Positions 1,241-61,368 are shown, numbered from the stretch's first letter. The stretch is 64,000 nt of DNA from Octopus sinensis (GCF_006345805.1 NC_043008.1:33976001-34040000); one strand, 5' to 3'. Numbers and translations: made by a program. The notes: a model not told the origin generated them from the sequence alone.

Positions 1241-1764
1241 ATTATATATATAAATGTTAGAACTTACTGTGGACAAGGTTGCATGGCGTTTGATTATAAA
1301 TAAATAAAAAGTATTCATGAAGTACAGGACATCACCAATGAGTGAAAAATATGTAAACAAACTAGAGATAAGTACAGGACAAAATGCCAAAAGAAGGTAA
1401 CACTCCTCATCAGTTGCTGACTGTTTTACTACTCCCTATTTCGTGCTTTCCATGACAAGATAGGAAAACTTTATGCACAGCAGCATCCAGAAATTTTTGA
1501 AATATAAAATTTGTGAAGAGTTAGGGTTTTGAACGAACGAACAACAACAGAGTGGATGTACAGAGTAAACAATCAACAAAGACAACTATTAAGGGCCATT
1601 AGTTAAAATGTACAGAAAACAAAAGACAAAGACAAGTGACAGCACAACAAGTATTATTATGATGCTTGGGAAAATTGTGTGCATATGAGAGTATGTGTGT
1701 GTATGTGTATAAGTAACACAGTGCATGCACTATGTGGAGTGGTGTTTGTTCTGTGTATTTATGT

Positions 1765-4255
1765 ATACATAAAGACCGTCTAAAAACAACTTGGATGCAT
1801 CCCTGGTCCAAACATTGGTATCTACTTGACTATGTGCTTGTACGCCAGCGGGATCTGAAAGACGTTTCACACACAAGAGTGATGCCCAGTGCAGAGTGCC
1901 ACACTGACCATCGCCTTGTCCACTGCAAGCTCAAACTGCAGTTAGAACCCAAATCCAAGAAGAAAGGTAACCCCATAAAGAAACTCAATGTCGACAGCTT
2001 GTTCAGGGAGGAAGTGAAAATCAAGTTCCAAGCAAACCTGCAGCAAAGACTAGACGAATCCCCCTGCACTGATGACACCACCCCAGACACCTTGTGGGAG
2101 AACCTGAAATCAGCCATTCTTAAGACATCTATGGAAGTTCTCGGGCACACAAAGAAGAAAAACAAGGACTGGTTCGATGAAAATGACAAGGAGATCCAGG
2201 AATTACTAGCAAGGAAGAGGGCTTCCTGGCATGGAGAACCCAGCTGTGTGCTGACCTCGGAGACTATAGAGGCTTCTATGAGGCTCTGAAAGCAGTGTAT
2301 GGCCCCACCCACCTGGCCCAGAGTCCCCTACGCAGTTCAGATGGACAAGACCTCCTCACCGATAACAGCTCCATCCTCGCTAGCTGGTCGGAGCACTTCC
2401 AAAGCCTTCACATTTCTCAACTTCCACTCAAAGAGGAGCTCAACGAACCACCCACCCTCGAAGAAACGATTGAAGCCATAGGACAACTCAAGAGCGCAAA
2501 GCAGCAGGAGTTGACGGCATCCCACCAGAAATCTGGAAGAATGGAGGTCCGATGCTCCATGACAAGCTCCATGATTTTCTTGTCTGCTGCTGGGAGCAGA
2601 GCAAGCTGTGACAGGATGTTTTTGATGTCGTCATCATAACCCTGTACAAGAAAAAGGGTGAAAGTCTGACTGCTCCAACTACCGGGGAATCCCCCTACTC
2701 TCCATCGCCGGCAAAGTACTTGCCAGGATCCTGCTCAACAGGCTAGTACCAACCATCGCTGAAGAAAACCTCCCCGAGAGCCAGTGTGGCTTGAGAGCCA
2801 ACAGAGGCACCACGGATATGGTGTTTGTCCTCTGCCAACTCCAGGAGAAGTGCCAAGAACAAAACAGGGGACTCTATGCTACTTTCATCGACCTTACAAA
2901 AGCATTTGACACAGTGAGCAGGACAGGACTATGGCTCATCCTGGAACGACTTGGCTGTCCCACCAAGTTTCTACAGATGGTGATCCAGCTGCATGAGAAT
3001 CAGTGTGGTCAGATCAGACTCAATGCTGACCTGTCAGAGCCCTTCCTCATTTCCAACGGCGTGAAGCAGGGTTGTGTCCTGGCACCAACTCTCTTCAGCA
3101 TCTTCTTCAGCATGATGATCAAGCATGCAACTGAAGATATGGAGGATGAGGATGGGGTGTATGTTAGGTATCGTCTGGATGGCAGTCTCTTCAATCTACG
3201 GCGCCTCCAATCCCACACCAAGACCCAGAAGAGGGTGATCCGAGACCTTCTCTTCGCAGATGACGCTGTCCTTGTCGCCCACACAGAGCGAGCCCTGCAG
3301 CGCATCACGTCCTGCTTTGCAGATGCCTCGTGGCTCTTTGGCCTGGAGGTCAGCCTCAAGAAGACGGAGGTACTTCACGAACCTACACCCCAAGAGGAAT
3401 ACCGCCCATGCCACATCACTATCTGTGGTACTGAACTGAAATCAATAGAGCAGTTTACATACCTGGGCTGCATCATCTCATCCGATGCAAGGTTTGACAG
3501 GGAAATTGACAATAGACTTTCTAAGGCAAATAGCTCCTTTGGCAGATTCTACAAACGTGTTTGGCACAATGGTGGCCTGAAGAACAAAACAAAGATCAGT
3601 GTCTACAGGGCCATGGTTCTCACCACTCTTCTCTACGGCTCAGAGACCTGGATCACTTACCGCAGTCACATCCGTCTCCTTGAGCGCTTCCACCAGCGAT
3701 GGCTCCGCACCATCCTCAACATTCACTGGAGTGACTTCGTCACAAACATTGAAGTCTTGGAGTGGTCCGAGATCCCAAGCACTGAAGCCACGCTACTAAA
3801 GTACCACCTCCGATGGGCAGGGCATGTCTCCAGAATGGAGGACCATCACCTTCCAAAGATTGCCCTGTTTGGTGAACTCTCCGCCGGCCACCAACTGAGA
3901 GGAGCTCCGAGGAAGTGCTACAAAGACTGCCTCAAGAAGTCTCTAACAGCATGTCAAATTAACCCCCCAATGCTGGTCAGACCTGGCTGCGGACCGTGAT
4001 GTCTGGCGCCACATGATCTTCAACGCAGTCAGCAAGTTTGAGGAACAAAGAAGAGACGCACTTAAAGACAAGAGACGCAGGAGGAAGGCGTGAGCTGCAT
4101 CTGACACCACACTGGATATTACCTTCATCTGTGGACACTGTTCAAGGACCTGCCTTTCCCATATCGGACTTGTCAGTCATGAGCGTGCATGCACGCGACA
4201 TGGACAGCCTTTCTGATCTTCGTTCGCAAAGCCAAGCCATGAGATGAGATGAGAT
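1765..4255 (+). mobile_element. RTE-BovB-like LINE, 5'-truncated (end of APE domain, RT, C-terminal Zn finger, short atgag tail)
   Basis: KTTWMHPWSKHWYLLDYVLVR (APE end), KNKDWFDEND, RT motifs FIDLTKAFDTV, GVKQGCVLAPTLF, LLFADD, YLG, HLRWAGHVSRM. Frameshifts lie upstream of 2791. Visibly more GC-rich than the flanks. Confidence 0.9.
2791..3999 (+). CDS. Reverse transcriptase ORF remnant of the RTE LINE (402 aa open)
   Basis: ORF track; contains the RT core including QGC and FADD motifs plus the thumb. Not a full-length ORF. Confidence 0.85.
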   Translation: MRANRGTTDMVFVLCQLQEKCQEQNRGLYATFIDLTKAFDTVSRTGLWLILERLGCPTKFLQMVIQLHENQCGQIRLNADLSEPFLISNGVKQGCVLAPTLFSIFFSMMIKHATEDMEDEDGVYVRYRLDGSLFNLRRLQSHTKTQKRVIRDLLFADDAVLVAHTERALQRITSCFADASWLFGLEVSLKKTEVLHEPTPQEEYRPCHITICGTELKSIEQFTYLGCIISSDARFDREIDNRLSKANSSFGRFYKRVWHNGGLKNKTKISVYRAMVLTTLLYGSETWITYRSHIRLLERFHQRWLRTILNIHWSDFVTNIEVLEWSEIPSTEATLLKYHLRWAGHVSRMEDHHLPKIALFGELSAGHQLRGAPRKCYKDCLKKSLTACQINPPMLVRPGCGP

Positions 4256-7684: not shown

Positions 7685-7727
7685 ATGAAAATATTTTCAA
7701 TAATTTTAATTGCAGTTGATTATTTTG
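7685..7727 (+). CDS. Candidate first coding exon (signal-peptide-like MKIFSIILIAVDYF) of the membrane protein gene
   Basis: ATG, Lys, hydrophobic run, then phase-1 donor G|GTAAGC that joins the phase-1 acceptor at 12945 (G|AT = Asp). Short, so it could be chance. Confidence 0.35.
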
Positions 7728-8750: not shown

Positions 8751-10975
8751 CACATACTCTAAATAATATCAATCATTTCATTAAGATGATATTGAACTTA
8801 GGCTGGAATACGAATTTTATTCTCAGGAATAATTCTGTTTAAACATCTACATTAGTAGTATAATACTACAGTTAACAGCCATTGATTTGAAAGGTAAGAT
8901 TAATATTCAGAAAATCTTTGGACTAATATTAACTTTTCATCAAATGAATTGAAGTTTTTTCTCCAATTTCTGACACTTATTTTCTTTTAGGTTCTGTGGG
9001 TCAGAATTATCAGAAAAAGACCAACTCAAGGTATGCACAGCCTGGACCAATACCAATGAGTACGTATCAGAATAATATATGCTTTAAGAATATTTGTAGT
9101 GTGCTACTGAATTAAATGTTATTCATTTCTGTAATCTTGTATCACCATCTACTTCAGTCTTAGCAAAATATTAATAAACAAATGGTAACAACAAATTCAG
9201 GAAATTGCATTTCCGTTGTTTTTACCAAAATTGCAGTTACTATCTATTGGTCACAGATCCTGACCAAAGTATCACCATTTTTCTGTGATGAGGTACAAAT
9301 TGAGTGTAGAATGCACAGTGCTGCAACAGATACATCAAAGCAGAACATCCAATTCTGAAAAAATTATGCCATCTCCTAATCTAGACTAGTAATTTTCTCT
9401 TATCAGCCCCAAACAAATGAAAAGTAAGGTTAATCTCAATGAATAGAACATCAAAAAAACGCAAGTGTTATTTAGCAGTATCACATGTATTCTAGAAACG
9501 TTTCTGCTATCTAATTCAGTCTTAGAAAAGAATTAAAGGCATCCCAACTCTCTCTGTCTGTTTCTCCCCCTACCTCCCTCTCACAATTGCTATCTGCCCA
9601 CTCTTCTTGATCTTCTCACTCCAGAGCCCAACCTGACACCTTGTTACCACTGTTTTTATCTCTTTTTCTAGATCCACCTTAATTACTTTCACCCACTCTT
9701 CTACAATCCTTTCTACCAAAGTCACAGAGCCAGAAATTTTAGGGGTTGAAGCAAATCTATTACATCAGCCCTCAATGCTTAACTAGTACTTATTTCATTG
9801 ACCCTTGAAAAGTAAGTCTGCTTCTGCTAAATTTGAACTCAGATCATAAAAACAACCAAAATACCACTAAGCATTTTGTCCTGCATGCAAACAATTCTGT
9901 TTTGCTTACCACCTTCTAACTCTTGTATAATGTGAACAGATTTGTATCTCCTTAACAACAAGAAACCTGTTCCAATTCCCTCTGTTGTACTCAAATGTTT
10001 CCTTACTTAGTATAGAACTGCCTCATTTTCTACTGTAGTTCCATTCAGTCTATGAAGATCTTAGTCTTGTAGTCCACATGGCAAATGCAAGGGTTCTGGT
10101 GCAATGAAAAAGCATCCAGTGCACTTTGGAAAGTGGTTGACACTAACAAGGACATCCAGACACAGAAACCATGCAAAAGCTGACACTGAAGCAGAAAGTG
10201 GTCCTCTGATACATCAGATTCTCTCAAACTATCCAACCCTTGCCAGCATGGAAGATTGATGTTAAAAGATGATGATGATGACAATGATGAAATCTCTGTG
10301 TGTGCGGGCACGTGCATGTGTATGCACGTGTGTGTGTATGCATGTATGTGCATGTGCATGTATGCATGTGTTTATATGTTCACGTGCATGTGTGCATATT
10401 TTCTACTAGCTTATTAAATCCTTTTAATATCAATTAGATAATATTGTACAACTAGGGTACATCAGATGGTTCACCTCACTTAGCAACCAGGAGGAATTAT
10501 ATGTAAATAAACTAACGTCATGGCTTTAAATCTTATTGTGCCAATGGCAACTTTGAAGAAAAATACTAGATTTGTCAAGATTTTACTAGAGTAGAACCCC
10601 AAAGAATATTAATTAATCAATTTTTAATACCTTATTTATCTTAGATTCTTTTCTAGTCAAGGCACATGGCCTGAAGTTTTGGGGAGGGGGCCGGTCGATT
10701 AGATCGACCCCAGTACATAATTGGTACTTAATTTATTGAGCCCGAAAGGATAAAAGCAAAATCGACCTTGGTGGCATTTGAACTCAGAATGTAAAGAAAG
10801 ACGAAATACTGCTAAGCATTTTGCCCGGTGTGCTAACGTTTCTGCCAGCTCGCCACCTTCTTATTTATCTAAGATTGAAATATGAATTTTATTTCCAGTC
10901 ATAACTCTATTTGAATATCTAATCCAGCAGAATAATACTATCATTTGCTTGAGGCTTAGAAAACAATAAATAAGC

Positions 10976-12459: not shown

Positions 12460-12830
12460 ACGTGGTTGTGCAATAGGAAATTTACTTCCCTGGCACACAC
12501 ATGGCTCCTAGTTCAATCCTACAGCTTGATACCTAAGGAAAGTGCTTTTTGCTATAGCCCCAGAGCAACCAAAGCTTTGTGAGTAGATTTAACAGACAAA
12601 ATCTCAAAGAAGCTTATCCTATATGTATGTGTGTGTGTCTTTGCATTTGTGTTTGTGTGTCTTTACGTTTGTGTTTGCTCTACCACCACTACTCGGCCAC
12701 CAGTGTTGGTTTGTTCACATTCCTGTAATGTAGCAGTTTGGCAAAAGAGATTGATTTAATAAGTACCAGGTTTTAAACAATAAGTACTGGAGTCGATTCA
12801 TTTGACTAAAATCCTTCGAAGTGGTGCCCC
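12460..12830 (+). mobile_element. tRNA-derived SINE (second family; ...ccaaagccttgtgagtggatttgg...gaaactgaaagaagccc...); pieces also at 15540-15710, 25350-25540, 39400-39570, 41090-41210, 43200-43620, 60400-60830
   Basis: Recurrent body motifs and internal (TG)n tract shared among the copies. Confidence 0.7.
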
Positions 12831-12944: not shown

Positions 12945-13201
12945 ATTACTGCTGGAGAATCACATTTTATATTTCAAGCAAATTTTTGTCTCAAACCTCA
13001 AATTATTTCACTGTTCAATTAATCAATGATGAAACACGTGTTTTCTCAAATTAAATGTCTTGTGCAAATAAATGTAGAAGGGGATCTCAACCAAGCTTTG
13101 ATTTTTGCACTCGACAAATTGATCCAGTGAAAGAATTAAAATTAAATGAAACAGTAAAAAATATCTTTAGTGGAATAGTATCTGGTTGGAGATTGGAAAC
13201 T
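12945..13201 (+). CDS. Exon encoding most of a PLAT/LH2-like beta-sandwich; in-frame TAA at 13052-13054
   Basis: Acceptor gtttcgtttcag| and donor act|gtaagt. Translation DYCWRITFYISSKFLSQTSNYFTVQLINDETRVFSN*MSCANKCRRGSQPSFDFCTRQIDPVKELKLNETVKNIFSGIVSGWRLET. RRGSQPSF and GWRLETV resemble the PLAT 'ERG..D.F' and 'GW.L..V' motifs. Phase 1 to 0. Confidence 0.6.
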
Positions 13202-13363
13202 GTAAGTATCTGGATAGAATTCTCATTTTTAATCTGTGTGTTTGTGTGTATGTGGCTGTGTGTACATATTAGTGTGGCTGTGTATGTGCATGATATGTAT
13301 GTATGCATGTGCGTGATTTTGCTGCATTATCATGTTACTTAAAAGTTCCTGTTTTCAATTCAG

Positions 13364-13421
13364 GTAATAACAGATTACTATCAAGCTCTTTGACCATTTT
13401 CTCACACTACTTTCAATCCAG
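13364..13421 (+). CDS. 58-nt exon (VITDYYQAL*PFSHTTFNP), in-frame TGA at 13391-13393
   Basis: Acceptor gttttcaattcag| and donor cag|gtaatg. Phase 0 to 1, which exactly bridges the flanking exons; continues 'GWRLET-VITD'. Confidence 0.5.
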
Positions 13422-13899
13422 GTAATGAAACAGGTACATAAATATAAGGATATAAAGATATCTCCTTTTAATGTGGAACACAGTCATCTCTCTCTCCCTC
13501 CCATTCACTCTTTCTTCCTCTCTCATTCTCTCTCTCTCTCTCAAACACACACTAATACACATACATATACATACAAACACATGCATACACACACACACTC
13601 ATACATAGATAGACAGATATACATACATACACTCATACATACATACATACACACATACATACATACACACACACATACATACATACATACAGTCATACAT
13701 ACATACAGACATACATACATACATACATATGTATACATACATCACTACACCTTGCTATGGTACCAGCTGCTACAGTGAATGCCACTGAAAGACTGACCAC
13801 AATATGCTCCACACAGTTATCCCTAACAGCTGCTAAAGCAACACCTGGGGTTACAGAGTTAAGCTATCAACAGACATATTCCAATGTGATATTTTTTTT

Positions 13900-20190: not shown

Positions 20191-20482
20191 ATACATACAT
20201 ACATACATACATACATACATACATACATACATACATACATACATACATACATACATGCATACATATATATATGTGTGTATGTGTGTGTTACATGCAATGT
20301 GTTTCACATTTTTATTCCAATTTTTTTTGCAGATTTATTTGATGAATTTGAATACTTCGGCTGCTTATACCTGCAAACTCGATGACCCTGAGGCCAAGGA
20401 AAAAGGTTGTAAACTAAAGCTCAAAGGTAAATTACATCATATGTCTATGTAGTTAGCGAGCAATGAATATAAATATATATAT

Positions 20483-25629: not shown

Positions 25630-26580
25630 CTAGCAAAGCATCCTGGCGTTGCCCAGGTGTTATGGCCTATAGCCACATTGTATTATTTGTGTGTTTCTTA
25701 CGGGCAGAATCGGCACACAAGGAGTGTAAGGCAAACAACACTTCTTTATAAACATGATCTTCGGTCGTTTTGTGATGAAAAACGCTGAAATTGTTGACAC
25801 CAAAAACAGGTAGAATGGCATCTTAGAGTAGAATGAAATCCTAACATTGCCCCCAAAATGACTTACGGATTTAAAGAATTGGATGACGTGTGATGATGTA
25901 AAGGTATCCGTCTTGTACAAAAGTAAAGTACAAGGAAAGAAAGCTGCTTCACTGTGAAAAGCATCAGACTGCACACTTCAAGATAAGTTATGTGAAACCG
26001 ACAATGCTTCTGGGTAAACTATGTTTTGTGTAAGCCTCGTGTTGATAGAATAAATATACAAGTCATCTGCACTGCTAACTCGAGAGCATGTGACATATAG
26101 TTGTCCGTGAGAAAATTGTAAATTGAGACACACAATTTTTAAAGTTTGGCCCTGGGAAGTGGAGGCGCTTGAATTGAAATGACACATTTGAGGGAACAAG
26201 GAGCATGCGTGGAATGTATGCGATCTCTCCTCAATGAGAGTCGACAATAATGGTTGCTTGTCGTTGTAGTAAGTCAATTTTGTACCATTGCATAGTGGTG
26301 GTGGGTCGAAATTCCTCAAGAGCAAGATAGGTGTAATTTCTTTAGGAACAACTAATGGGGTGGCAGACCTCTGGGTTGTAGAAAGTTGAGAAATTCAACT
26401 GGAGACTCAACAGTGGCATGTTCGTCGATGGTAGTATCAATGGAGACAAACGTTGAGGTATCTCCAGGTAGAATGTGGAGGAGTTCATGGATTACATTAT
26501 CAACGCTTTCCTTCCGAGGTGCTCTCTCTGCTTTTTTGAAGTTGTCTTACAATATGGGAAATACCTTTTCTTTAACCTTT
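25630..26580 (-). mobile_element. Helitron 3' part: PIF1 helicase C-terminus plus canonical 3' terminus
   Basis: PVEFLNFLQPRGLPPH, LLRNFDPPPLCNGTKL, SQGQTL, FSHGQLYVTCSRV, TQNIVYPEAL; hairpin cctgg-N6-ccagg (25642-25657) then CTAG|T at 25630. Confidence 0.9.
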
Positions 26581-27696
26581 TCCAAATTAATTCATTTCAC
26601 CCTTCATTATTACGGATAACCATATTTTATCTCAGTAGATGACCACAGCATCTTGTTTTGGCTACACGCGGGTGGGAAGGGGCTGGTGACACAATCTTTT
26701 CATTCACACTTTGAGTTTGGTGATACTAGTTGCGGATTCTAGCTCGCTCTGATACTGATTTGAGTTGGTGCCTTCTGGTATCTCAAAATTCAATATATAA
26801 TCATTTATGATTATAGTATTCTACGCTGAAGAGAAAAGAAGTTTTGGTAAGGTAGAATTATTTAATATTTAATTCTTATGCTTTCCTAAAAACTTGATTT
26901 CGAAACGTGCGTCCGTAGATAACTTAAAATTGTATGATAGATTGCCGTCAATTCATTCTCTCTTACCTGTTTGTGTCTGCCTTCCAATTGCTGTTTTTAC
27001 TGAGATCTCCCTTTTTAGTAGAAGAAATAGCTATAACTCTTTGACTGCTATTTCTAAATTCGGTATGTGGTAAGGCAATTCGTTGCTAAACCCTTTATTG
27101 CTTAGTATTACTTAAATTTTCCTCGAATGAGGCTTTTACATGCCGAAGACTACTTGGTGTAATTGATAATTATTCCAAATTAATTACTTTCACCCTTCAT
27201 TATTACGGATAACCATATTTTATCTCAGTAGATGACCACAGCATCTTGTTTTGGCTACACGCGGGTGGGAAGGGGCTGGTGACACAATCTTTTCATTCAC
27301 ACTTTGAGTTTGGTGATACTAGTTGCGGATTCTAGCTCGCTCTGATACTGAGTTGAGTTGGTGCCTTCTGGTATCTCAAAATTCAATATATAATCATTTA
27401 TGATTATAGTATTCTACGCTGAAGAGAAAAGAAGTTTTGGTAAGGTAGAATTATTTAATATTTAATTCTTATGCTTTCCTAAAAACTTGATTTCGAAACG
27501 TGCGTCCGTAGATAACTTAAAATTGTATGATAGATTGCCGTCAATTCATTCTCTCTTACCTGTTTGTGTCTGCCTTCCAATTGCTGTTTTTACTGAGATC
27601 TCCCTTTTTAGTAGAAGAAATAGCTATAACTCTTTGACTGCTATTTCTAATTCGGTATGTGGTAAGGCAATTCGTTGCTAAACCCTTTATTGCTTA

Positions 27697-27700
<4 letters not shown>
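26580..27700. repeat. Near-identical tandem duplication, period 593 bp (~1.9 units)
   Basis: Offsets 26601/27194 and 26828/27421 are both 593; only a few differences between the copies. Confidence 0.95.
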
Positions 27701-27995: not shown

Positions 27996-28034
27996 GTGCT
28001 AATGCTACAAGTACGAAAGATCAAACAACAACAA
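27996..28034 (+). CDS. 39-nt Ser/Thr-rich stalk exon (G)ANATSTKDQTTT
   Basis: Acceptor ttttgtttttatag| and donor |gtatga. Symmetric phase 1-1, NAT sequon; splices in frame to the TM exon. Confidence 0.7.
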
Positions 28035-28829: not shown

Positions 28830-31260
28830 TCGGATAAAGACTATTTAACATTTTGTTGTGGAAGGATTCCAACCGCCGCTCAAGTAACTAAAAGGTCGAC
28901 TGACTCATTATTCTAAAGTAAAGAACTGTGAACAATTGGCGGTTCACGATGAGAGTTTGATATAAAACGTTGAGTCTCGAGTAATAGCAGTGCATTGTCT
29001 ATATACTACCCCGCCTACCTGCTTCGTTATATTATATACGCAATACAAGGATATAAAAGTGGGCACGAGTTGTTCAAAGTGTGCAGTTCATGTTTTTTTT
29101 TGCTCTTTTTGGCACAAAATCAAAAAGTACATCGTTTTAACATGGAAGACTTATTGGGCCTCCGTGGTGCAGTTGCAAAAGTAACAGCAGCAACAACAAC
29201 AGCAGCTGCAGGATCAACTACAACAGCAACAAAATCAAAACCAACAGTTGCTGGAATTAATGTTGAAGAAGTCCGGAAATACTTCAGGTTCGTATTCGTC
29301 AGACAGCGTAGCGAAGTCAATTGAAGAATTCAGCTATAAACCAGAAGACGGTACTACCTTTTCTGCATATGTTCTCAGATATGAAAAAAATCTTCAAAGT
29401 GGAGTGTAAAAGTTGGTCCGACGAGAAAAATGTACGGCTACTTTTGAGAAACTTATCCCCTGCCGAACACAAAAAATATAGTAATTATATTCTTCTAAAG
29501 AAGCTAGGTGAGATTTGTTTCGATGAAACAATATTTTATCGAATATTTTCAGTGAAAGAAGTTCCCTGTTCAATGCTCACGGGGGAATGTTTAAACTTGG
29601 TCAAAAAAGATGATGAAGATTTCGTCACTTATGCCAGAGTGGTTAATAGATACTGTGAGAAATTCAAATTGAATGAGTTTATCCCAGACGTGTTCAAGTC
29701 TTTAATGTTTGATCAAGGGCTTACTGCAAACAAAGAGGCAGGAATACGTTCTCGGATATTAACAAAATTAGAACAGGACCAAAATTTAACAGTAGCTGAA
29801 GAATGTCAGAGTATTATAAATCTACAATATGATGCAAATAAAAATTGAAGAGAAAGATTGCTCTCAGATACAGGCATTTCGACTGGTAATGAATAAGAAA
29901 CAAGAGAAAAATGTCAAAACGGAATCCATGTTATGGGTGTAGTGGTCTACATTTTAAAAATAACTGTCCGTTTATAAAATGCTTCAAGAGTGGTAAATTA
30001 GACCATAAAATGTTGCATTGTAGGACAGACCATAAAAAAACATTTCAACAGAAACAATCGCGTAAACGGATTATCGATGATAAAAAATACAAACAAACCT
30101 CAAAGAAAATTTCTGTATATAAAAATTAATTCCGCAAACGTAATTGGAAACAGGCAGCGATATTTCAATGATTAACACAGGTACATGGAGACCTAGATTA
30201 AATGAAACAATGTTTCTCAGAGGGGTGCATATTTTTAAGAGTGTCTGCCCCCGACGGGTCTGGTCGACGTCCATTTTTGTTAATGATTTGTCCTAAATAT
30301 CTTATTTTCGGTAACAAAAATTCAGACTTTTCTACCCTCAAAGTAAAAGCCATACACCCTAATTATTTGGAATACATATTTCACATCATAGCTTCTCAAA
30401 GTGGGTGCTACCGCCTGTCGGTTGGTGTTGAGCCGGTCCAGGTGGCCGCTGTTGTCGAAGGGGGCTTGAGGTGGGGGGGGGCAGTAGAGAAAAAGGAGGC
30501 GTTAGGAGGAAGGCAGTGGATTTGGGGACGCTATGAATTAATCATATTATTATTATAGTATTATAAATTAGATAATATTATATTAATTATCAAATTATTC
30601 ATAGTATATATAAATTAGTAAAATATATAATATTCCTTTATACATAAAAATAGGGGTGGGGCGCTGAGGTTATTATGTGGTTATGAGGGGCCGGTGGACC
30701 CAAAAGTTCGAGAACCTCTGTTTTACATGTGACCACTCCGCCGTATCATCCTAGGTCAAATGGACAAGCGGAGTGTTTTGTTGACACTTTCAAGAGGGCG
30801 TTTGAAAAGGCGAGCAATGAAATGATGACGATTTTGCATTCTAACAATGTCTAAGAGTGTACCGAGTAACATCTAATCCGAATACATCGTAGGCAATGTC
30901 ACCCGCAAAGTTGATGTTTGCTAGAAAGGTCAGATCTGTTTTTGATACGCTGATGCCCAATGAAAATAAGAAAGCCAATCAAAAATACTTCAAAATTCTT
31001 CAAGTTAGGTGACATAGTTTTTTTTTTAATCTATAGATATGGTAGAGAAAGCTGGAAGGACGGTGTAACAATTAAATACATTGGAAGAATGATATTCCTG
31101 GTAAAAGGAAAAATGTTTAATACAAAAAAATATTAACCAGCTTAAAAGAAAGGTTCACAGAAAAAACAGCCACGAGAAATGAAATCCCTATGGAAGTATT
31201 ATACGGCACGTTTGAGGTACCAACACCCAAATAATTTGAAACTACACGTTCTAGCACCAG
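28830..31260 (+). mobile_element. Gypsy LTR retrotransposon relic (LTR end/PBS, gag, Zn knuckle, protease start, integrase C-terminal part; RT/RH missing)
   Basis: aaca|attggcg PBS-like at 28935; FKVECKSWSDEKNVRLLLR gag; CYGCSGLHFKNNC knuckle; TGSDISMIN protease; TTPPYHPRSNGQAECFVDTFKR integrase. Confidence 0.8.
30387..30720. mobile_element. hAT (Charlie-like) MITE nested in the Gypsy relic
   Basis: Ends catagcttctcaaa / ttcgagaacctctg are imperfect TIRs; flanked by an 8-bp TSD tttcacat / ttttacat (7/8 match). Confidence 0.8.
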
Positions 31261-32349
31261 AAAACAGAAAAGAACGGAAGCACTGGAATTAGGTTGGAAT
31301 TAGGAAGAATATCCAGCTGTAAAAACCATGCTGAACCTGAGATATCTGAGCAAACATCATCTTCTAATCTCTTGGATTCTGTCAAACCACCCAGGCCATG
31401 ACAACATGGAAAACTGACATAAGATGTTGATGATGGTATATATACATACATGTATGTGTATGATGCTGGTATATATACATATATGTATGTGTGTGTGTGT
31501 GTGTACGAGTGCATATAATTTATACACGCACATTCACACATGCATATGTATATATATGTATGTACATATCTACCTACCTATGTATGTATATACATACATG
31601 CAAACATACAAACGAACAAACAAATAGTATACACAACAGAATTCATCAGATATTGGTCAACACAAAACTATTGGAAAAGTAATTTATTCACCAACCCAAG
31701 ATTTTGCAGAGGGGAATTGAACCTGGAACCACATGGATTTGAAGCAATCTTTTTAACAATACAGTAATGACTTGTGAAATAGCAGCTGTCCTTATTGTAA
31801 CTGTTTTAGATTGATTAGATGGTAGTTGCTTTTTTCGGTTAACTCCATGCTTTTCAAGTGTTTCTTACCTTCTTAAGATGATACAGTGTGATTCGAGGAA
31901 CATTTGGTTGCAATTACATGCTGATTCCTTGATTTGTCTCTTTCACTCTCTGATAATTAGTTGTTAGGATCCTACAGTGTGGATTGGTGGTAAATTCAGT
32001 TACTTTCATACTGGATGGAGGTGTGGATTCAGTGTCTACTGTTCAGAATGACAGAATACCTCAGCCTCCCGAATCAGTCCAGATGATGTGTGAGGAGTGA
32101 GAAAGCAGCAAATTGGGTTGATGTTCATCAGAACAATGACTTCAGAGAAAGAATATTTGAGATGGCTCTCCTCCTAAATACAGTATGAAAGGTGATTAAA
32201 ATGATTCATGGTGTTTGAATGAATTCAAATAATATTAAAGGTAACAAAAAAGCTACAAATTGTTGTAATGTTTGACCATTAAAGAAGCAAAAAATCAAAC
32301 AAGCAAATTCTCTTTTTTAATGCTTTCCATTTTTCTCTTAACATTTCAG

Positions 32350-32416
32350 TAATTCTTTGCAGTGTTCTTATACCAACAATAGTCCTGCTTTGTATATTAT
32401 GCATCATAGTTATCAG
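32350..32416 (+). CDS. Transmembrane-helix exon (I)ILCSVLIPTIVLLCILCIIVI(R)
   Basis: Acceptor ttttctcttaacatttcag| and donor cag|gtatgt. 67 nt, phase 1 to 2; 22 hydrophobic residues followed by RHRYKK in the next exon. Confidence 0.9.
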
Positions 32417-33599
32417 GTATGTAATATAAAACTACATCTTACTACTGAGACTCTTTTAGAGTATCATTATTATTTTAACTTTTTTTCTCTATTTTTACTG
32501 TACTAAGTCAGAGGATGAAGAGCAGTGCTCATCTCCCATTTTCAAGACATATAAGACTGGAAGGACGAAGGGAAATTGTATTAAAAGCACCCAAAGGTCA
32601 AGTAGTCTTAGAAAACCAGTTGGCTGATTGAGTCTACCATTCAAAACAAAAACAGGAAGGATTCTTCCAACAAGTTTCTATACAGTTCTCATTTACAAAA
32701 CTTCATTCACAAGGCTTATGTCTCTCCATGAGTATAGCAGAAGATACTTGACTATAGTGCTATTGAATGGGATAAAACTAAAAACCTCACAGTTGCAAAG
32801 TGAATTTATAAACCACTTAGCTATGCCTTCATCCGTAAGATAATCTGAACTTTGAGTTAATATTAATCTGTTTTCCATGATATTAATTGTGCATGTATAG
32901 TGATATATACCTCCAAGCCATCATTGAAGAGAGATTTTTAAATATTTTCTGTTGTTCTGTTTAATCCAAGGAGGGGACAGATGACATGCAGCAGGTTATC
33001 TCTTAAGAACATCTTAAAGTCTTATGTTTTATAGCTCCTTATATAAATGTGTATTTAGATAGGCAGCTACTAGATACCGATACTAATTTGATAGTTTTAA
33101 CTGATAGATATATATTCTATATCTTTTCTGAGTTTACATTGTTGTTTCCTAATCTTCCTAATCTTTAATCCAAAGCTATTCACATTTAATCTATTTGGAG
33201 GAATACATTCCACACAGAAATAGCTTCAGTATGCACAACTATCTGTCTGTGTCATATTCTGGCAAGAACAAAGTTAACTTGTCTCTCTTGCTCATCTGAG
33301 CGATTGGTGACTAATTGACCAATTAGATTTCTGAAGTGTGTGTTATAAATGGGATGAGTACTGACATCATGAAACTTCAAGGGCCTTGGTTTCACTTTAT
33401 TACTTTGTATCCTGATGCTGGAAACTATTAATTTATCACTCTTATTACAAATATTTGAAAGGTGATAGAAACAGTTGTTGATAATCAACTCCTCCAATAA
33501 CTTGACTCCCTTTCCCTTCTCATTGTGTACTAAATACAGCTTCAGTTAAACTGGCCTAGTGGGTATCCGATTTTCTCTGTTAATCGCCTTTAATTCCTT

Positions 33600-34600
33600 G
33601 CTCTTGAGAAAATTAGTGAAAGCAATTGCATTTGACATCAGCAAAGTTTTTGTCTTGTACAAGAATCTCCTGATTAAGACATTTACTTATATGTTCAATC
33701 TGTAGTGTTTTCATGAAGGAAAGCTTGTCGTCAGTATATATACATAATTTACTTGCTACATCAATACAGAAGGTGTTCATACAATATAAGAAGAGTAGAT
33801 TTTATATGAAACGATGTATACTACAGGTGCAGGAGATCAACAGAAATTCATATTAGGCTGCTTTTTACATATCAATGCACGTTCTTCTTGTTGTGTAGCC
33901 ATGGTATGTTTCTTCACCTATCATACCAGGTTGAATATGCAGCTCTGAGAACAGCTATGAGTGAGAGTAAACTCTACCAAAGACTGAATTCACTTTCAGT
34001 CCAAATTCACCCTGGCTTTTTCAAACTAAATCCACCTCTATTTGTAGGCTCTTTCCACACAGGAAGTCCTAGTCATGCTGCCAGACTATCACATGACCAA
34101 AAAGCAAGAGGTGCTGACAGGACCGAAAATGTGTTTGCACACATGATCAACTCATGGTTTTCATGTGGCTAAACATAGATTCCAATTCAGCTGTTATAAT
34201 TCTGTCTCTTGTCTCCCAGGCAGGAAGCTTTCATAACTGCATGTGCTGATGATTTTGTTATTTCCTCTCCTTAACATCAACAACCTACTTGTGACTTCTA
34301 TCACAGCTCACACTCCCTGTGCAGACAACACTAATCTCTATTCTTTCCTAATCTTACACACAAAGGTGTTGTTCACTTGCAGCTTAGCTACTTCATGTCA
34401 AATCGGCACTGCCTCTTTGAGGAAAAATCATAGAAGTATTGACATGTATGTCATGTCCCCTTCAACACTGCAAAAACAATATAATCATTCTTGCCTTGGG
34501 GAGCATGAAATAAACACTCCTAATATTACTACAAGTGTGATATCTGCCCCAGCAATGTCACTGATCCCCAGTCCAAGTGGTTCCACATTCATTGCAAAAA
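33600..34600 (+). mobile_element. CR1/Jockey-like LINE RT remnants
   Basis: AIAFDISKVF at ~33625 and PCADNTNLY (YADD-like) at ~34315; heavily decayed. Confidence 0.5.
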
Positions 34601-34739
34601 CTGTGTCCAGAAATATACTTCTGTTCTGAACAGTTGCTGACTCTCGACAAAGTTCAAGTAAAACTCATGGCAGAAAACTGCTGCAGCATTTTGGGCTGCT
34701 ACTGCTACTGCTGTTGTTGTTGTTGTTGTTAAGCAACAA

Positions 34740-36790
34740 GATGGGTAAGGGTGATTAGGTGATGGTCTAGGGCTTAGGTGCAGGAGACCCCAGACCTTCG
34801 AAAAAAAAAACCTTTGGTTGTCTTGTAAATGTGTTTCTATAAAGACAAAGTGACTAGAGACGGCTAATCAGGCAGATGTGGAAGGTGTACTAAAAGAGAT
34901 AATGCCTGATATTCGGCATCTCCCAAGAGCCAAGCAGTTTATGGGCATTTCAGTGTTCTTCAAGACTGAAGTTCTGGTTGCCAAACACTCTGTGGTTCGC
35001 TATCAGAACAAAAAATATGTGCTCCAGACATTGTATTTACGAAGGAGGATGGTGAGGATAAAGATGTCAGAAATTCCACTAGTGGGAGTTACAACCTCCT
35101 AAAGATGAAGTGGACCTGTTGTGAGAATTGGTCTGGAAACAGTGTGGAGGTACTACTCCACATTAAACCAGACCCAATCATTTGGCATTGCGCGTTTGGT
35201 CTGACAAGGATGCCCACACTTGCCCCTTTTGTACAAGATGGCTCTTGAGCCATTGCTACAGGAGCTGGTTCTTTCATGGGGCATACCATATGAACTAGAA
35301 TGCAGGTTTGTGGCAGCTTATGTGGATGATGTCACAGTAATAGTGTCAAATGTCTCAGAAATTGAGGTAATCACCACTGCAGTATGGGAGTACAAAGCAG
35401 CAAAAGGAGCAAAAAATAACCAGAAGTTACTGGGCCTGCAGCTCAGCAACTGGAGAGGCAGATCCATACCATCTGATAGCATGGTAGAACACTAGACAGA
35501 AGGACTGGTTAAATTGCTTGGGGTCTTGTTTGGTCTGGACCTCCTGTTAGACAAGAACTTGGAGTGGGTGACAAACTGGGTAGCCAGTCTCCCCCAGAAA
35601 TAAGCAGAGAGAAAGCTGTCATCACTACTGTCATTTACTACTATCTGACTGTTGTCCCTTGCCCTCTTTTCTGGTTGATCAGCTGGAGCAATTGCTCTTC
35701 CCACTTCCTGTGGAAGGGACATGTCTAACTCCTCAGTCGGTCCATCTGCTGTCAACAGGTGCTGAGTGGAGGACTGGGAATGCCATGGCTAATGATATGC
35801 AGACATGTACTGAGTCTCATTGATAGAGCAACAGTCCTGGATTAAGCATAGATCAAGTAAGGGCACTTTGCATCTGGAGTGTAAGCAGGCTCTCACAGCC
35901 CTCTGCTAGTCAGGCAATGTAGTCAGTGGAAATTCTACATTGGAATTCTATAGAAAATTAGTGGTGGGCAAGAACAACGATGTCTTCAGAGGAATTCTAG
36001 GAAGGATCAATTATCTGGTCTTTTATTGAGCAATTTCAGGCTGGAGTCTATCTATTATTTCCAGAAATCCTTGGCCTGATAGTGTTACCAGGGAGCTCTG
36101 CCAGTTCAAGACAAGCTTTACAAGCTTCGAAGTGCCATCAGACAGACATGTCCTAGATGTGGATAGGGCAATGAAACTTCTCTGCATGCACTCATTTCAA
36201 ATTTGTGGATCATTGTCAAAATGCTGTTGATGCATGTAGGACAAATCTGGTTATCAGACGACTCCATCATGAGGATCACCCTGCCATCTTCTTTTGGCCA
36301 TGGAGGGAAGGCAGTTTTCCTCTGTCTGATGGCTATGGCGAAAGAGGAAGTGTGGTGGGCATGGTTGAAATGATTGAAGACAGGTACTTTCTCTTCAGCT
36401 GAGCCCTCATTGACTTTCTCAAGTTCCACTTGAAAAGGAAAATGAGGGTGGTGAGGAAAGTGCTGCCTCCTAGTATTGATGTTGAAAGGTGGGTGAATGT
36501 AGTGAGGATGATCCATGTGAATGGGCCTACTCTGAACATACACTTGTAAGCCAGGGGGTTTGAGAAGATGAGAGGTGCTTGCTTGAGGTGCCTTTGGAAG
36601 TCAGGGTGAGGAAGATGTGTGGAGTTCCTTGGTTGTCCTTAGGATGAACTCCCATTATGTGGAGAATTTTATTGTTTATTTTTTGTTGTTAATTGTTATT
36701 GTTTAATTGTATGTACAAATTGTTGTGCTAAACTCCCCTTGCATTGCACCATCCCTGTATGTTTTGTGTTCAGATCTTGTGGCCAATAAA
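34740..36790 (+). mobile_element. Tx1/L1-clade LINE, internally deleted and degenerate
   Basis: RQGCPHLPLLYKMALEPLL, AAYVDDVTVIVS, LLGLQL; C-terminal finger region; ends ...ggccaataaaaac. Confidence 0.7.
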
Positions 36791-36809
36791 AACAAGATCA
36801 TGAATATCA

Positions 36810-37370
36810 TTATTATTATTATCATTATTGTTTGATGAAAACTCACAGATTATTTTGCTGGGTATCATGGAAAGTGTCAGCTGTCCACAGCCAGCAGACT
36901 AAGGTGACACTTGTTTGCTGGTCATGCTTCAAGAACATTGCAAAGAATTCTTGCAGTTTCAAGCAATGAGGATTTTTTTAGGTTCTTCTACTTTTACATT
37001 TGTACCAATCCTTTTGAGCTGAGTTGGTAGTTGAGTGCTGATACTTCCAAGTGCACCAGTTACAATTGGTACCACATCTACTCTCCTCAATGACCACAAC
37101 CTTAGTATTTCCCACTTCAAATTGTCGTAGTCGTTCAGTTTCTCTTCTTTCTCTTTGATCCTGTTGTCACCGGGTCATGCTATGTTGATTATCATGCATG
37201 GTCTTCCTTTTTTTTTTCCACCACAACAATGTTCAGTTTCCAATGTCTGGTCAGGTGATTGCACTGAATCAATGCATCCCACAAGATTTTGCACTTTTCA
37301 TCTTGGTGATTCCTTCTGGGGTTTTTCTCATACCACATCTTTGCTTTTTGTAGTCTGTGATAAGGTGTTA
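36810..37370 (-). mobile_element. R4/Dong-like LINE 3' end (restriction-like endonuclease)
   Basis: Minus strand CKILWDALIQC..., VVPIVTGALGSI, LQEFFA..., followed by an (aat)n tail. Confidence 0.75.
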
Positions 37371-37883
37371 AGTTAGCAGAAGTGTTACCATGTCAGACGA
37401 AATACTAAGCAGTATTTCTTCTGGTTTATGTTCTGCGTTCAAATACCATCAAGGCTAACTTCATCCTTTCATCCAGCTGAGTACTGGAATCAATGCAACT
37501 GACTAACCCTCTCCTCCCAAATTTCAGACCATGAGCCTATAAAAAAGATTATTACTATTATTATTAGGATGAATCAAACTGACAGTTGTTGTCATGTTAA
37601 ATACAATATTTAGCAGCATTTCTTCTGGATCTTTTCATGCTAAGTTCAAATACCACTGAAGTTAAATTAGTGCTTCATTCTTCTGGGGTTAATATAATAT
37701 GTACCAATTGACTCACCACCAGCCCCAAATTACTGGCCTTGTTCCTAATTTTGAAACCATCATTATCATTATAAAAAAAAATTAGTAAGAAGTATTATTA
37801 GTTCTTTTTTTGTGATTATTAACAAAATTTAATTCTAAAATCTACTTAATGTTGTCTGATTAAATATGCTAACATTTTCTTAG

Positions 37884-38328
37884 ACACAGGTACAAGAAAT
37901 CCAAATCAAATTTGATATCTGAAGAAATGACCAAGAAGAGTACCACAAGGACCTGTTTACCAGTGAAGATAGAATCACGACTAAATAATACTTTGAAACT
38001 GCAAGCAGCAGAGATATTGCCCCCAAATAATGCACATTCAATTAGAAATGATCCTTGCATGATGGAAAGGGAATTGCATTCCACTGATGTATATTATTCT
38101 GTCATAAAAGATTTACGTATGGTTGATGATAATGTTGAAGAATATATGTATATGGCTAAAAGGGATATATATTCAAATGTAAATGATAAATATGAAAATG
38201 GCTCAGATACTGTTCACAGTGATTTATGTTTCACTGAGAATGAAGGATATTATGTAAATTCAGCTGAAAATAATTTATGCTCTGATAAAAATGGCATGTA
38301 TATTGATATGGAATCTTGCCATAAGTGA
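37884..38328 (+). CDS. Terminal exon: cytoplasmic tail of a type I membrane protein with multiple Tyr motifs
   Basis: Acceptor ttttcttag|a (phase 2) gives (R)HRYKKSKSNLISEEM...MYIDMESCHK*. Open for 148 codons. Motifs VYYSVI, YMYM, YSNV, YENG, YVNS, YIDM. Confidence 0.85.
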
Positions 38329-38825: not shown

Positions 38826-39778
38826 TTCCAATACCTTAGTCTTGCCATTGTCCTGTGGTAATGTTGCGAGCATGCTGGCTGGCTTCAGTAGTTTCATTTG
38901 AAATTTGTGGTGTGAGACCAAATGTAGCACTTTGTATTGCATTGATGTTTCTTTTGTCTCTCTTCCTTCTCTTTTTCTTTCTTTCTCTCTTCCTTTTTTT
39001 TTATCCTGATTTTATTCTTTTATTTGTCTTTCTTTCGTAATACGTTATATTAAGGAAAAATAAGAATAAGAGATATTTTTTCATACAATAAATTTGGAAA
39101 TAATATTTTTTAGGCTCAATTCCATTAAATTATTAAATTTTAATATCTTCAATTAATTTTCCTTAATATAATTCACAGTTCAATATTTGATGCTGAACAG
39201 TTGTATTTATTATTTTAATTATTAATTAAGGTGATGAACTGGCAGAATCATTAGTATGCTGGGCAAAATGCATAGTGGTATTTCACCTGCCACTACGTTC
39301 TGAGTTCAAATTCTGCCTTCTGACTTTGCCTTCATCCTTTCGGGGTCAAATTTCAGGACAAGATTATATTATATTATTCTATCCTTTTACTCTTACTTTT
39401 ACTTGTTTCATTATTGACTTGGGCCGCTAACCGCGTATGGAGCACCACCTTAGTCAAGACAAATCATCACCAGACTTATTCTTATTCTTGTAAGCCTAGT
39501 ACTATTTATTGGCGTCTTTTGCCGAACTTTGTAAGCAATGTTGAGGCGGGGGAGACAGACACAGACACACACAACATATCACACACATGTATATATATCT
39601 ATATTATCTATATATAATAGTTATCGCCATACTAATATGGCATTCTTATAAAAATAAGAAAAAAGCTGTCCGCTTATTAGCTTCATGAGCCATCGCCTTA
39701 AGTTAGCTGTTGATACACAAACTGTATCCATATACTTCGAACAAGGGAGGTCAGTCGCTCCACACTACTTGACCGGCA

Positions 39779-39820
39779 GCTACAGACGCGTTTCGGGTAT
39801 TTGCCCCTTTTCAATGCAGC
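39779..39820 (-). ncRNA. Minimal type I hammerhead ribozyme, U3-A8 variant core
   Basis: gctgca-TTGAAAA-ggg(gcaaata)ccc-GAAA-cgcg-TC-tgtagc: 6-bp stem I, G-C-closed stem II, palindromic ACGCGT stem III, GUC cleavage triplet. Confidence 0.75.
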
Positions 39821-40132
39821 GTAGCAGCCAGTAGGTGTCGCTTCCGACATCTCTGTTCGATGGTTTTATTACCTAGTTTCGGTGGAATACATCCACTTGT
39901 TTCAATAATAGAAATATTAAAATAACTAAGTCTCTCTAAAAGAGAACAGCGCAGCGTTCCCGGAAAATAATAGTTATCGCCATACTAATATGGCATTCTT
40001 ATAAAATAAGAAAAAGCTGTCCGCTTATTAGCTCCATGAGGCCATCGCCTTAAGTTAGCTATTTGATACACAAACTGTATCCATATAACCTTCGAACAAG
40101 GGAGGTCAGTCGTCCACACTACTTGACCGGCA

Positions 40133-40173
40133 GCTACAGACGCGTTTCGGGGTATTGCCCCTTTTCAAGCAGC
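40133..40173 (-). ncRNA. Hammerhead copy 2 (lacks the stem I base adjacent to the core)
   Basis: gctgc-TTGAAAA-gggg(caata)cccc-GAAA-cgcg-TC-tgtagc. Confidence 0.6.
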
Positions 40174-40706
40174 GTAGCCAGCCAGTAGGTGTCGCTTCCG
40201 ACAATCTCTGTTCGATGGTTTTATTTACCTAGTTTCGGTGGAATACATCCACTTGTTTTCAATAATAGAAATATTAAAATAACTAAGTCTCTCTAAAAGA
40301 GAACAGCGGCAGCGTTCCCGGAAAATAATAGTTATCGCATTACTAATATGGCATTCTTATAAAAATAAGAAAAAGCTGTCCGCTTATTAGCTCCATGAGG
40401 CCATCGCCTTAAGTTAGTATTTGTTCGAAGGTTATATGGATACAGTTTGTGTATCAAATAGCTAACTTAAGGCGATGGCCTCATGGAGCTAATAAGCGGA
40501 CAGCTTTTTTCTTATTTTTATAAGAATGCCATATTAGTATGGCGATAAACTATTATTTCCGGAACGCTGCCGCTGTCTCTTTTAGAGAGACTTAATTATT
40601 TTAAATTTCTATTATTGAAAACAAGTGGATGGATCCACGCTACCGAAACTAGGTAATAAAACCATCGAACAGAGATTGTCGGAAGCGACACCTACTGGCT
40701 GGCTAC

Positions 40707-40746
40707 GCTGCTTGAAAAGGGGCAATACCCGAAACGCGTCTGTAGC
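40707..40746 (+). ncRNA. Hammerhead copy 3 in the inverted arm
   Basis: gctgc-TTGAAAA-ggg(gcaata)ccc-GAAA-cgcg-TC-tgtagc. Confidence 0.6.
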
Positions 40747-40987
40747 TGCCGGTCAAGTAGTGTGGAGCGACTGACCTCCCTTGTTCGAAGGTTATATGGA
40801 TACAGTTTGTGTATCAAATAGCTACTTAAGGCGATGGCCTCATGGAGCTAATAAGCGGACAGCTTTTTTCTTATTTTTATAAGAATGCCATATTAGTATG
40901 GCGATAACTATTATTTTCCGGGAACGCTGCCGCTGTTCTCTTTTAGAGAGACTTAGTTATTTTTAATATTTTCTTTTTTCTATTACC

Positions 40988-57591: not shown

Positions 57592-58975
57592 TATTATTTT
57601 GTTGCTTGGACCCACAAAAATCTTATATAGGTCCTGAGGGTCCATCTGGTTCAGATGAACATATTAATCCCAGTACTTATTTATAAGCTAGGTACTTATT
57701 CTATTCGGCTCTATCATCAGACCACTAATTTATGAGGATGTAAGCAACAATGACGCCCACAACAGAATCTAAACATACCACCTGCTGTATTCATTATTAT
57801 TTCTTCTCGGAGCAAACTTGGAAATGTCCAAAATTTATTGGAAAATAGTCATTTGTGCTTTCTTATGACAGGTCGAATTTGCCTTTCATCCTTTCAGGGT
57901 TGATAAAAAAAGCACTAATCCAGGGTGATGGATGAGCAGAATGGCAAAAACATTGGATCAAGTGCTTTGTGGCATTTGTTCAACTCGATGTGTTTTTGAG
58001 TTCAAATCTTGTCATATTCCTGTTTTGTTGAGAATCTTAATTTGTGATCTAGTTTAACATCCCTGCCTGCCATCTTAGGTGCTTTCACTGGAGTCCACTA
58101 TATTCTTTTATAATCTAGGCACAAGGCCCAAAATTTTGGGGGAGGGCCAGTCAATTAGATCGACTCCAGTATGCTACTGGTACTTAATTTATCCACCCTG
58201 AAAGGATGAAAGGTAAAGCCAACCTCAGCAGAATTTGAACTCAGAATGTAAAGATAGGCAAAATACTGCTAAGCATTTTGCCCAGCATGCTAATGTTTCT
58301 GCCAGCTCACCACCTTAGGAGTCCTTTGTATTGCACACATTCAGATCAGGTCTTTGATTTGAGGTTACTTTCCTTCCTCCTCCCCACTCATCTCAGAGTG
58401 TTCTGTATGTATGTGTATATATACACACACATTAGTATACATACATACATACATACATGCATAAATACATACATACATACATACATACATACATACACAC
58501 ACATATTAGTATATACATACATACATACATACATACATACATACATACATACATACATACACTCACACATATATATAAATAGATTTTCACTACACATAAA
58601 TGTAAATAGGATAACAGTATTGATGAGGATATTATGTTTAGTAACAAATACTAATTGTATTAAAAATGCATTGTAGTGTGTATATACAGATATATATTAT
58701 AAAATTTATTGGCAGTAATAAGCTTGTAATTTTTTTTATTGCTATATAAATGCACATTCCCTTAACATTTCATCCTTTAGCACTGCATTTTCCATTATTA
58801 ATGTTCAAGCTTCATCCTTGTTGAATGTTTTTCCAGCTTTCTTCTCACATGCATGCCATATATATATACTTACACATATATGCTATAGAATATATACAAT
58901 GATATCACCCCAACATATTAACACATGCTGTCTTAAAGATAGCACGTCTGCACTAGTATATATGTATTATATTAC

Positions 58976-61342: not shown

Positions 61343-61368
61343 CTCAATAACTTAATAATAATAATAAT

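Follow-up and report, generated by a model that had tools for sequence, protein, structure and literature searches.

Premature stop codons that are corrected by adenosine-to-inosine (A-to-I) editing of messenger RNA (mRNA) are known from fungi (PMC10776026), and stop-loss editing of UAG to UGG in open reading frames (ORFs) is a known class in cephalopod transcriptome work (PMC8382921). Restorative editing returns a transcript to its ancestral state after a G-to-A change, and its median levels in coleoids are below 2.5% (PMC6881472). In the known restorative cases, one edit brings the codon, typically a UAG or UGA derived from UGG, back to its ancestral sense, and the A>G change is seen in RNA. 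We analyzed a 64,000-nt window of the Octopus sinensis genome (CM016870.1:33,976,001–34,040,000, plus strand, assembly GCA_006345805.1), in which an earlier note had described an otherwise intact six-exon receptor gene with two in-frame stop codons, TAA at 13052 and TGA at 13391, that A-to-I editing might rescue. The background given there on heavy coleoid recoding and on fungal stop correction was sound. Moreover, the locus resembles the known restorative cases in that a genomic, adenosine-containing stop codon lies in frame in a real exon of an ADAR-active organism. It differs from them, however, in its most likely ancestral codon, AAA, in the two edits that would be required and in a predicted single-stranded site, and it is known from genome sequence alone.

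The other described systems with which the locus compares are unprocessed pseudogenes and null alleles. Like these, it keeps the intron-exon structure of its paralogues, carries one nonsense substitution in a constitutive exon and has intact paralogues nearby. As in unprocessed pseudogenes, its divergence is approximately neutral, and the array to which it belongs is marked by deletions, exon duplications and inserted transposons. In contrast to a typical unprocessed pseudogene, it has just one truncating lesion and would hence be very young or still polymorphic; also, RefSeq treats its 3' exons as a short protein-coding gene of their own, LOC118765597. We conclude that the TAA is very probably a lysine-to-stop change in a young unprocessed pseudogene or null allele of an Octopus tandem gene family, with the TGA lying in an intron.

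Gene structure and the two stop codons

Window positions 22219–48328 (26,110 nt) are 100% identical to CM016870.1:33,998,219–34,024,328. We mapped the proteins of relatives by tblastn onto the window and onto the comparator loci L003, L004 and L005. The comparators L002, L003 and L004 are paralogous to the locus; L003 and L004 are from O. vulgaris, were reached via annotated proteins and are paralogous units with 85–97% DNA identity, and L005 is from O. bimaculoides. The six segments of the earlier gene model (Table 1) have AG/GT borders and compatible phases and total 909 nt, as had been stated, and the only internal stops in their translation of 302 residues are codon 51 (TAA, 13052–13054) and codon 110 (TGA, 13391–13393). 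As an otherwise intact six-exon gene, the model held only in part. Homology supported four of its six exons, but of the other two one is intron and one is unsupported and probably intronic, two real exons (the linker exon and the second exon of the PLAT-like module) had been overlooked, and one stalk exon of the paralogues is absent from the window. The corrected model, again of six exons, totals 972 nt; it stays in frame when the signal exon supplies one leading base, and the TAA is its sole stop.

The segment that carries the TGA (13364–13421) is intron, not exon. Homologues from three Octopus species join the counterpart of the first module exon, which ends in '...W.LES', straight to an exon starting with 'I.LMNLNTS...', i.e., the true second module exon of the window, and no annotated model uses the segment in question. 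In L003, L004 and L005, a counterpart of the segment follows the homologous exons. The TGA is shared by both O. vulgaris copies, of which the one in L003 contains an additional stop. In O. bimaculoides, one of two copies was translated; its stop is found at a different place and its donor is GC, not GT. Moreover, the true 7.1-kb intron contains 409 AG..GT segments of 30–150 nt in the right phase with at most one stop, 191 of them stop-free, and no more than one stop occurs in 72% of the 58-nt windows drawn at random here. The exon-like look of the segment is hence explained by chance. The earlier model stayed in frame because its 58-nt segment and the 94-nt exon agree in phase (0 in, 1 out). 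The mRNA has no second stop, because the TGA belongs to the intron that separates the two PLAT exons. The proposal of an in-frame lesion at 13391 thus had to be abandoned in view of homologue splicing, the TGA in paralogous introns and the chance abundance of such segments, the exon thought to contain it being unused. Selenocysteine insertion or readthrough at this TGA was rejected as well, since the codon is intronic.

The TAA, in contrast to the TGA, is a stop within a genuine mRNA exon, homologous to the PLAT exons of relatives. At the amino acid level, this exon is 62–78% identical to repeats of O. bimaculoides (E 1e-38 to 2e-43), and at the DNA level 87–95% identical to O. vulgaris paralogue exons; its borders are the same as in RefSeq XP_014780935.1. 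The codons AAT TAA ATG of the window correspond to AAT AAA ATG (N K M) in the closest exon copy, that of O. vulgaris L003 (94.8% identity over 229 nt), and the flanking codons are identical. The equivalent codon is ACG (Thr) in L004 and AGA, AGA and AAA in three O. bimaculoides modules; Trp, to be expected in relatives if editing restored the codon, occurs in none of these paralogues or co-orthologues, where Lys, Arg or Thr was seen. Judged from these alignments, the ancestral codon was most likely AAA and the lesion an A-to-T transversion at its first base. Given an ancestral AAA, this first-base change would be irreversible by editing. The position, occupied by K, R or T in relatives, belongs to a stretch that varies in the alignment with PLAT repeats. 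In this coding sequence, 5.6% of the possible substitutions create a stop, and a neutral divergence of 1–2% predicts 0.5–1.1 stops.

The same exon has lost the most conserved glycine of the PLAT motif (Table 1). Glycine is found at this site (G17) in every other family member, and conservation there is at least 90% among family and PLAT repeats; the change to glutamine adds a missense sign of decay to the stop codon, and the absence of a stalk exon (see below) points the same way. In O. vulgaris and O. bimaculoides, the PLAT exon also occurs in intact form, and each exon of the locus has a homologue in family members whose frames are open. Its lesion lies in a constitutive coding exon that has no in-frame bypass keeping the domain. 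The internal acceptor of an O. vulgaris model (GCAG/AT, with the slash marking the splice border) reads GCAA in the window, and an in-frame internal acceptor downstream of the TAA was rejected, since the O. vulgaris AG is absent and the next AG (13076–13077) is out of frame. Of all contexts, a UAA with A as the next base is the least prone to readthrough. The O. vulgaris model concerned, CAI9731026.1, enters the first PLAT exon at this internal acceptor (L004 39669, GCAG/ATAAATGT) and so leaves out the 5' half of an exon that looks intact; such acceptor use is probably an annotation error.

In the mechanism that we propose, the locus is one unit of an Octopus-only tandem array of genes for type-I membrane proteins. 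The predicted order of the unit protein is signal peptide, linker, PLAT/LH2 β-sandwich (the 257+94-nt module), Ser/Thr stalk, transmembrane helix and a tail with tyrosine motifs. A single A-to-T change would have converted Lys (AAA) to TAA in the first PLAT exon, and the full-length product would be cut off after about 60 residues, so that domain, membrane anchor and tail would all be missing. The full-length form would then have lost its function, and full-length transcripts would presumably be subject to nonsense-mediated decay. A 177-residue RefSeq model covers the 3' exons of the locus and may exist because the upstream frame is closed.

The remaining exons were assigned as follows. The second module exon was matched in tblastn by five family proteins (P0001, P0004, P0005, P0006 and P0007; E down to 2e-10) and has homologous exons in L003, L004 and L005, and the linker exon has a homologous exon in L004 and L005. 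The first segment of the earlier model is probably intronic: its sequence is present in two copies in L004 at intron-level identity, is unused by the model CAI9731026.1 and has no counterpart in L005, which has a canonical signal exon instead. A canonical signal exon (MNRIFILLFLLQIVYS / MNCIFILLCLLQIVYS) was not found in the window by DNA and peptide search; by collinearity with L004, it should lie about 4–5 kb upstream of window position 1. The 120-nt stalk exon of the paralogues was likewise not found in the window by DNA and peptide search, and its absence leaves the frame unbroken because stalk exons are phase 1-1. Upstream of the linker exon, 8810–8895 has its homologue in the exon annotated as the first of O. 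bimaculoides LOC106876757 (MEFVLELFCLNIYISSIILQLITAIDMKG), the window copy having no ATG, one stop and a one-codon deletion.

Table 1. Features of the Octopus sinensis window; positions are counted from its first nucleotide, and the fourth column gives membership in the earlier and the corrected six-exon models
Feature	Position	Strand	Model	Basis or remark
Earlier exon 1 (ATG...GT, MKIFSIILIAVDYF)	7685–7727	+	earlier	unsupported as exon, probably intronic
Linker exon, 69 nt, phase 1-1, (G)SVGQNYQKKTNSRYAQPGPIPM	8991–9059	+	corrected	tblastn to P0006 residues 52–71; AG/GT borders
PLAT/LH2-like module, first exon, 257 nt	12945–13201	+	both	carries the TAA
CAA (Gln) in place of PLAT glycine (SGTS/AGTD to SQTS)	12992–12994	+		family alignment; two-base change vs paralogues
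TAA nonsense codon, sole real in-frame lesion	13052–13054	+		AAA (Lys) in closest paralogue
Earlier exon 3 with TGA at 13391	13364–13421	+	earlier	intronic; lies 163 nt inside the 7.1-kb intron that separates the module exons
PLAT-like module, true second exon, 94 nt, phase 0 to 1	20333–20426	+	corrected	ttttttttgcag/ATT ... AAAG/gtaaat
Ser/Thr-rich stalk exon, 39 nt, phase 1-1, ANATSTKDQTTT	27996–28034	+	both	matches P0007 and P0006; 93.7% to L004 85391–85469
Mini-exon, 22 nt, ATG of RefSeq XP_036363741.1 (MNSNNIK)	32219–32240	+		conserved in L002–L004
Transmembrane exon (ILCSVLIPTIVLLCILCIIVI)	32350–32416	+	both	homology and RefSeq P0002 translation
Cytoplasmic-tail exon with stop codon	37884–38328	+	both	100% identical to P0002; longest gene-related ORF in the window
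First exon of next array unit (MHLCIPFSEPAIWLKDNDEKRKQVTYPFCGSGDD)	59811–59912	+		identical to first 34 residues of O. vulgaris CAI9731026.1; donor GTAATT
Transposon remnants, taken together	1717–3996; 25981–26394 (-); 29312–29845; 52475–54522			

The PLAT-like ectodomain and its family

PLAT/LH2 domains (PF01477) are found in lipoxygenases, pancreatic and lipoprotein lipases, polycystin-1 and LOXHD1-like proteins. Relatives of the locus among 5.8 billion proteins formed seven clusters, all of them from Octopus (O. bimaculoides, O. sinensis and O. vulgaris). An exhaustive phmmer search of 1.84 billion representatives gave no closer relative outside Octopus, and the protein database searched contained no transcript-derived family members. 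The family module comprises about 117 residues, with the pattern YCWRITFYIS..SGTSNY.TVQLINDETRVFSN[KR]LSC..KC.RGSQPSF.FCTPQIDPVKE.KLNETVK....W.LES followed by the part encoded in the second exon. It is followed by a stalk rich in Ser and Thr, then by a transmembrane helix (ILCSVLIPTIVLLC.LCIIV) and finally by a tail about 150 residues long. In every annotated model that has both halves, the module is encoded by two exons of 257 and 94 nt, together a phase 1-1 unit. The first exon ends with '...W.LES' and gtaagt; the second is preceded by ttgcag, starts with 'I.LMNLNTS' and ends with '...KL.../G gtaaat'.

Pfam searches with P0001, P0006, P0007 and the window protein gave nothing above threshold and no PLAT match at E ≤ 10, only noise (TMEM154, SCIMP), and a profile search of Protein Data Bank (PDB) sequences with the domain alignment gave no match. 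In the phmmer search of the 1.84 billion representatives, however, three proteins (P0008, P0010 and P0014) were matched at whole-sequence E values of 2.9e-10, 1.5e-6 and 7e-5, respectively. Each of them carries 7–13 Pfam PLAT/LH2 repeats, and the aligned stretches correspond to approximately positions 4–97 of the profile. When family modules and PLAT repeats were aligned with MAFFT, the alignment was gap-poor, and the motifs AGTD, ERG..D.F and W.L coincided. AlphaFold2 predicted an eight-strand β-sandwich from this alignment (pLDDT 77.4, pTM 0.74); its PLAT rows bias the fold result toward PLAT, whereas the sequence result is unbiased. With the predicted fold, all 38 Foldseek matches in the PDB at E ≤ 1e-3 were PLAT domains of lipoxygenases or of pancreatic or lipoprotein lipases, with TMq values of 0.57–0.76. 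Across the first 50 matches, TMq was 0.57–0.77, and the PLAT domain of Rab6-interacting protein fell just below the E threshold.

Judged from the sequence comparison and the predicted fold, the module is a divergent PLAT/LH2-like ectodomain. It aligns over its whole length with PLAT repeats, with the block matches SGTSNY.TVQL to AGTDANV.I.L, RGS..SF.F to ERG..D.F.F, IDPV.EL.L to.G....I.I and W.LESI to W.L..V.V. Unlike known PLAT domains, it stays below the Pfam threshold, has no PDB sequence match and shows extra cysteines and N-glycosylation sequons. It also differs from them in topology, as the outer domain of a protein that crosses the membrane once and has a mucin-like stalk and a tail with tyrosine motifs, and it was found in Octopus only. 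In the literature, we found no description of this family or architecture. The label 'Ig-like domain-containing', given to some members in UniProt, is unsupported by the fold, and O. bimaculoides XP_014780935.1 has three modules and no transmembrane helix.

The tail contains the tyrosine motifs VYYSVI, YMYM, YSN, YEN, YVN and YIDM, and most of these stretches recur in paralogue tails. Topology, together with these motifs, was the basis on which the locus could be called a receptor. From the motif strings, the protein would be a candidate receptor with signaling of the immunoreceptor tyrosine-based inhibitory motif (ITIM)-like, YxN or YxxM type.

Competing explanations for the TAA codon

The earlier note had named a pseudogene, a null haplotype or a base-call error as simpler explanations of both stops; they apply to the TAA, which is an ordinary Lys-to-stop change, but not to the TGA, which is intronic instead. 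For the downstream exons, an estimate of the ratio of nonsynonymous to synonymous substitution rates (dN/dS) had been suggested. Compared with the three paralogous loci L002–L004, and from small counts, dN/dS was 1.4–2.6 over all exons and 2.2–5.6 for the tail exon, i.e., purifying selection was not seen. The dS values of 0.02–0.07 were similar to the intron divergence (about 4–8%), and the second PLAT exon was 17–19% diverged, exceeding the introns. These values suggest that evolution is either relaxed or diversifying throughout the family. With dN/dS of at least 1 family-wide, an 'otherwise intact' frame is no evidence of function. The array is also unstable, with stalk exons duplicated or absent and frequent transposons. 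The tail exon is tandemly duplicated in L002 (12064–12996) and L003 (33706–34632), and the upstream duplicate has a 5-nt deletion that alters the C-terminus (...MYIDVLP); the tail exon of the window is single and looks like a mosaic of both duplicates.

The RefSeq protein XP_036363741.1 (P0002; LOC118765597, 177 residues) is encoded exactly by the mini-exon and the transmembrane and tail exons, RefSeq coding extending over 32219–38328 only, and the same shortened form is annotated for the paralogue LOC118765596, 300 kb upstream. The locus could thus be alive, with the stop removing the PLAT isoform only and leaving a product that lacks the ectodomain, i.e., the adaptor-like 177-residue protein from the 32219 start or a form made by skipping of both PLAT exons. 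The mini-exon is 98–100% conserved in four loci, and the tail motifs are intact. Moreover, the PLAT module, as a phase 1-1 unit of 257+94 = 351 nt, can be skipped in frame with loss of the domain, and module number varies in the family, with three in XP_014780935.1. We nevertheless regard such a product as unlikely to explain the locus: the conservation of the mini-exon is not above that of the surrounding introns (92–97% identical), a Gnomon start at the first available ATG is the expected annotator output when the upstream frame is closed, and the tail exon has a dN/dS of at least 2. Less likely still, and in our view improbable, is that the gene is intact and its real or common allele AAA, with the TAA stemming from a mistake in assembly or base calling or from a variant carried by the sequenced animal alone. 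The TAA is a one-base difference from the closest paralogue, a single O. sinensis assembly is the source, and the remainder of the corrected frame is open. In polished long-read assemblies, however, substitution errors are much rarer than indel errors. In addition, the two-base Gly-to-Gln change at a conserved site of the same exon fits real relaxed evolution, and the RefSeq model is not extended upstream.

Rescue by editing would require that ADAR converts both adenosines of the UAA (13053 and 13054), which would place Trp at a variable PLAT position and yield full-length protein only where editing is strong, as in ADAR-rich tissue. Coleoid coding sequences are heavily edited, stop-loss editing of UAG to UGG in cephalopods (PMC8382921) and fungal stop correction (PMC10776026) are precedents, and at a position occupied by K, R or T in a variable stretch of the alignment Trp might be tolerated. 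With Lys, Arg or Thr in relatives and an A-to-T change at the first base, however, the ancestral residue cannot be restored. Both edits would have to occur on one molecule, as the UAG and UGA intermediates are still stops, and the coleoid median for restorative editing is that given above (PMC6881472). Given Lys ancestry and the need for two edits, editing here would not be restorative in the coleoid or fungal sense. The predicted pair probabilities of the two adenosines were 0.13 and 0.05 in the spliced mRNA (mean 0.56) and 0.23 and 0.17 in an 800-nt pre-mRNA context (mean 0.62), with no helix at either adenosine, and the exon folded no better than shuffled sequences (z = -1.45). Around the first PLAT exon, we found no inverted repeat complementary to the exon, only TG/CA microsatellite pairs in the flanking introns. 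The lack of purifying selection downstream and the intronic position of the second supposedly editable stop also speak against editing. With one of the two stop-containing exons unused and non-Trp residues at the TAA codon of relatives, we consider A-to-I rescue at this locus highly improbable. The microsatellites flanking the exon are TG-rich at 12620–12677 and 13234–13322 and CA-rich at 13543–13730; their pairing in pre-mRNA could loop the exon out, with the TAA excluded from pairing.

Several points weigh against a young pseudogene or null allele, the reading that we prefer. The base at 13052 is that of one assembly, in which a base-call error, a heterozygous null and a fixed pseudogene are indistinguishable, and RefSeq does model a product from the 3' exons, whose tail tyrosine motifs remain intact. 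The comparators are paralogues or co-orthologues (85–97% DNA identity), not a strict O. vulgaris orthologue. A dN/dS of at least 1 is also found in copies with open frames and is hence no mark of death for this copy alone. Moreover, the 5' end of the gene, with the canonical signal exon, falls outside the window.

Surrounding sequence and implications

The window has a G+C content of 36%, and microsatellites and transposon fragments are abundant. Among the transposon remnants are a reverse transcriptase of the long interspersed nuclear element type (RVT_1, E 9e-31), pol pieces of long terminal repeat retrotransposons (RVT_1, Integrase_H2C2) and an ORF that matches DUF7083; the minus strand carries a weak, below-threshold match to a Pif1 2B domain. 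A 529-nt direct repeat (26580–27108 and 27173–27700, 99.2% identity) lies immediately upstream of the stalk exon, and 39614–40971 contains a group of 94–96% identical repeats, mostly inverted. A plus-strand gene model of 591 residues covers CM016870.1:33,697,902–34,024,328 (more than 326 kb), encloses LOC118765596 and LOC118765597 and includes 22219–48328 of the window; by k-mer search, it showed no membership of the PLAT-ectodomain family. Toward the end of the window, 58099–64000 is collinear with L004 8030–18726, and the remainder of the next array unit lies past the window end.

What had appeared as two editable stops in an intact receptor gene thus reduces to one ordinary transversion and one exon-calling error. 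In AT-rich genomes with long introns, right-phase GT-AG segments are plentiful, and short exons therefore require support from homology or RNA. Double editing of the UAA, if true, would have been the first case of an animal gene gated by premature-stop editing; the locus is, however, a poor candidate for editing-licensed expression, and its value in this respect is mainly negative. A useful by-product of the analysis is an uncharacterized, Octopus-only tandem array of predicted single-pass PLAT/LH2-like membrane proteins with tyrosine motifs of the SH2 type. Its members evolve at the neutral rate or faster, with duplicated modules and frequent decay. By analogy, the pattern of this family resembles that of lineage-specific immune or recognition receptor families, and the PLAT-ectodomain family may merit separate study.

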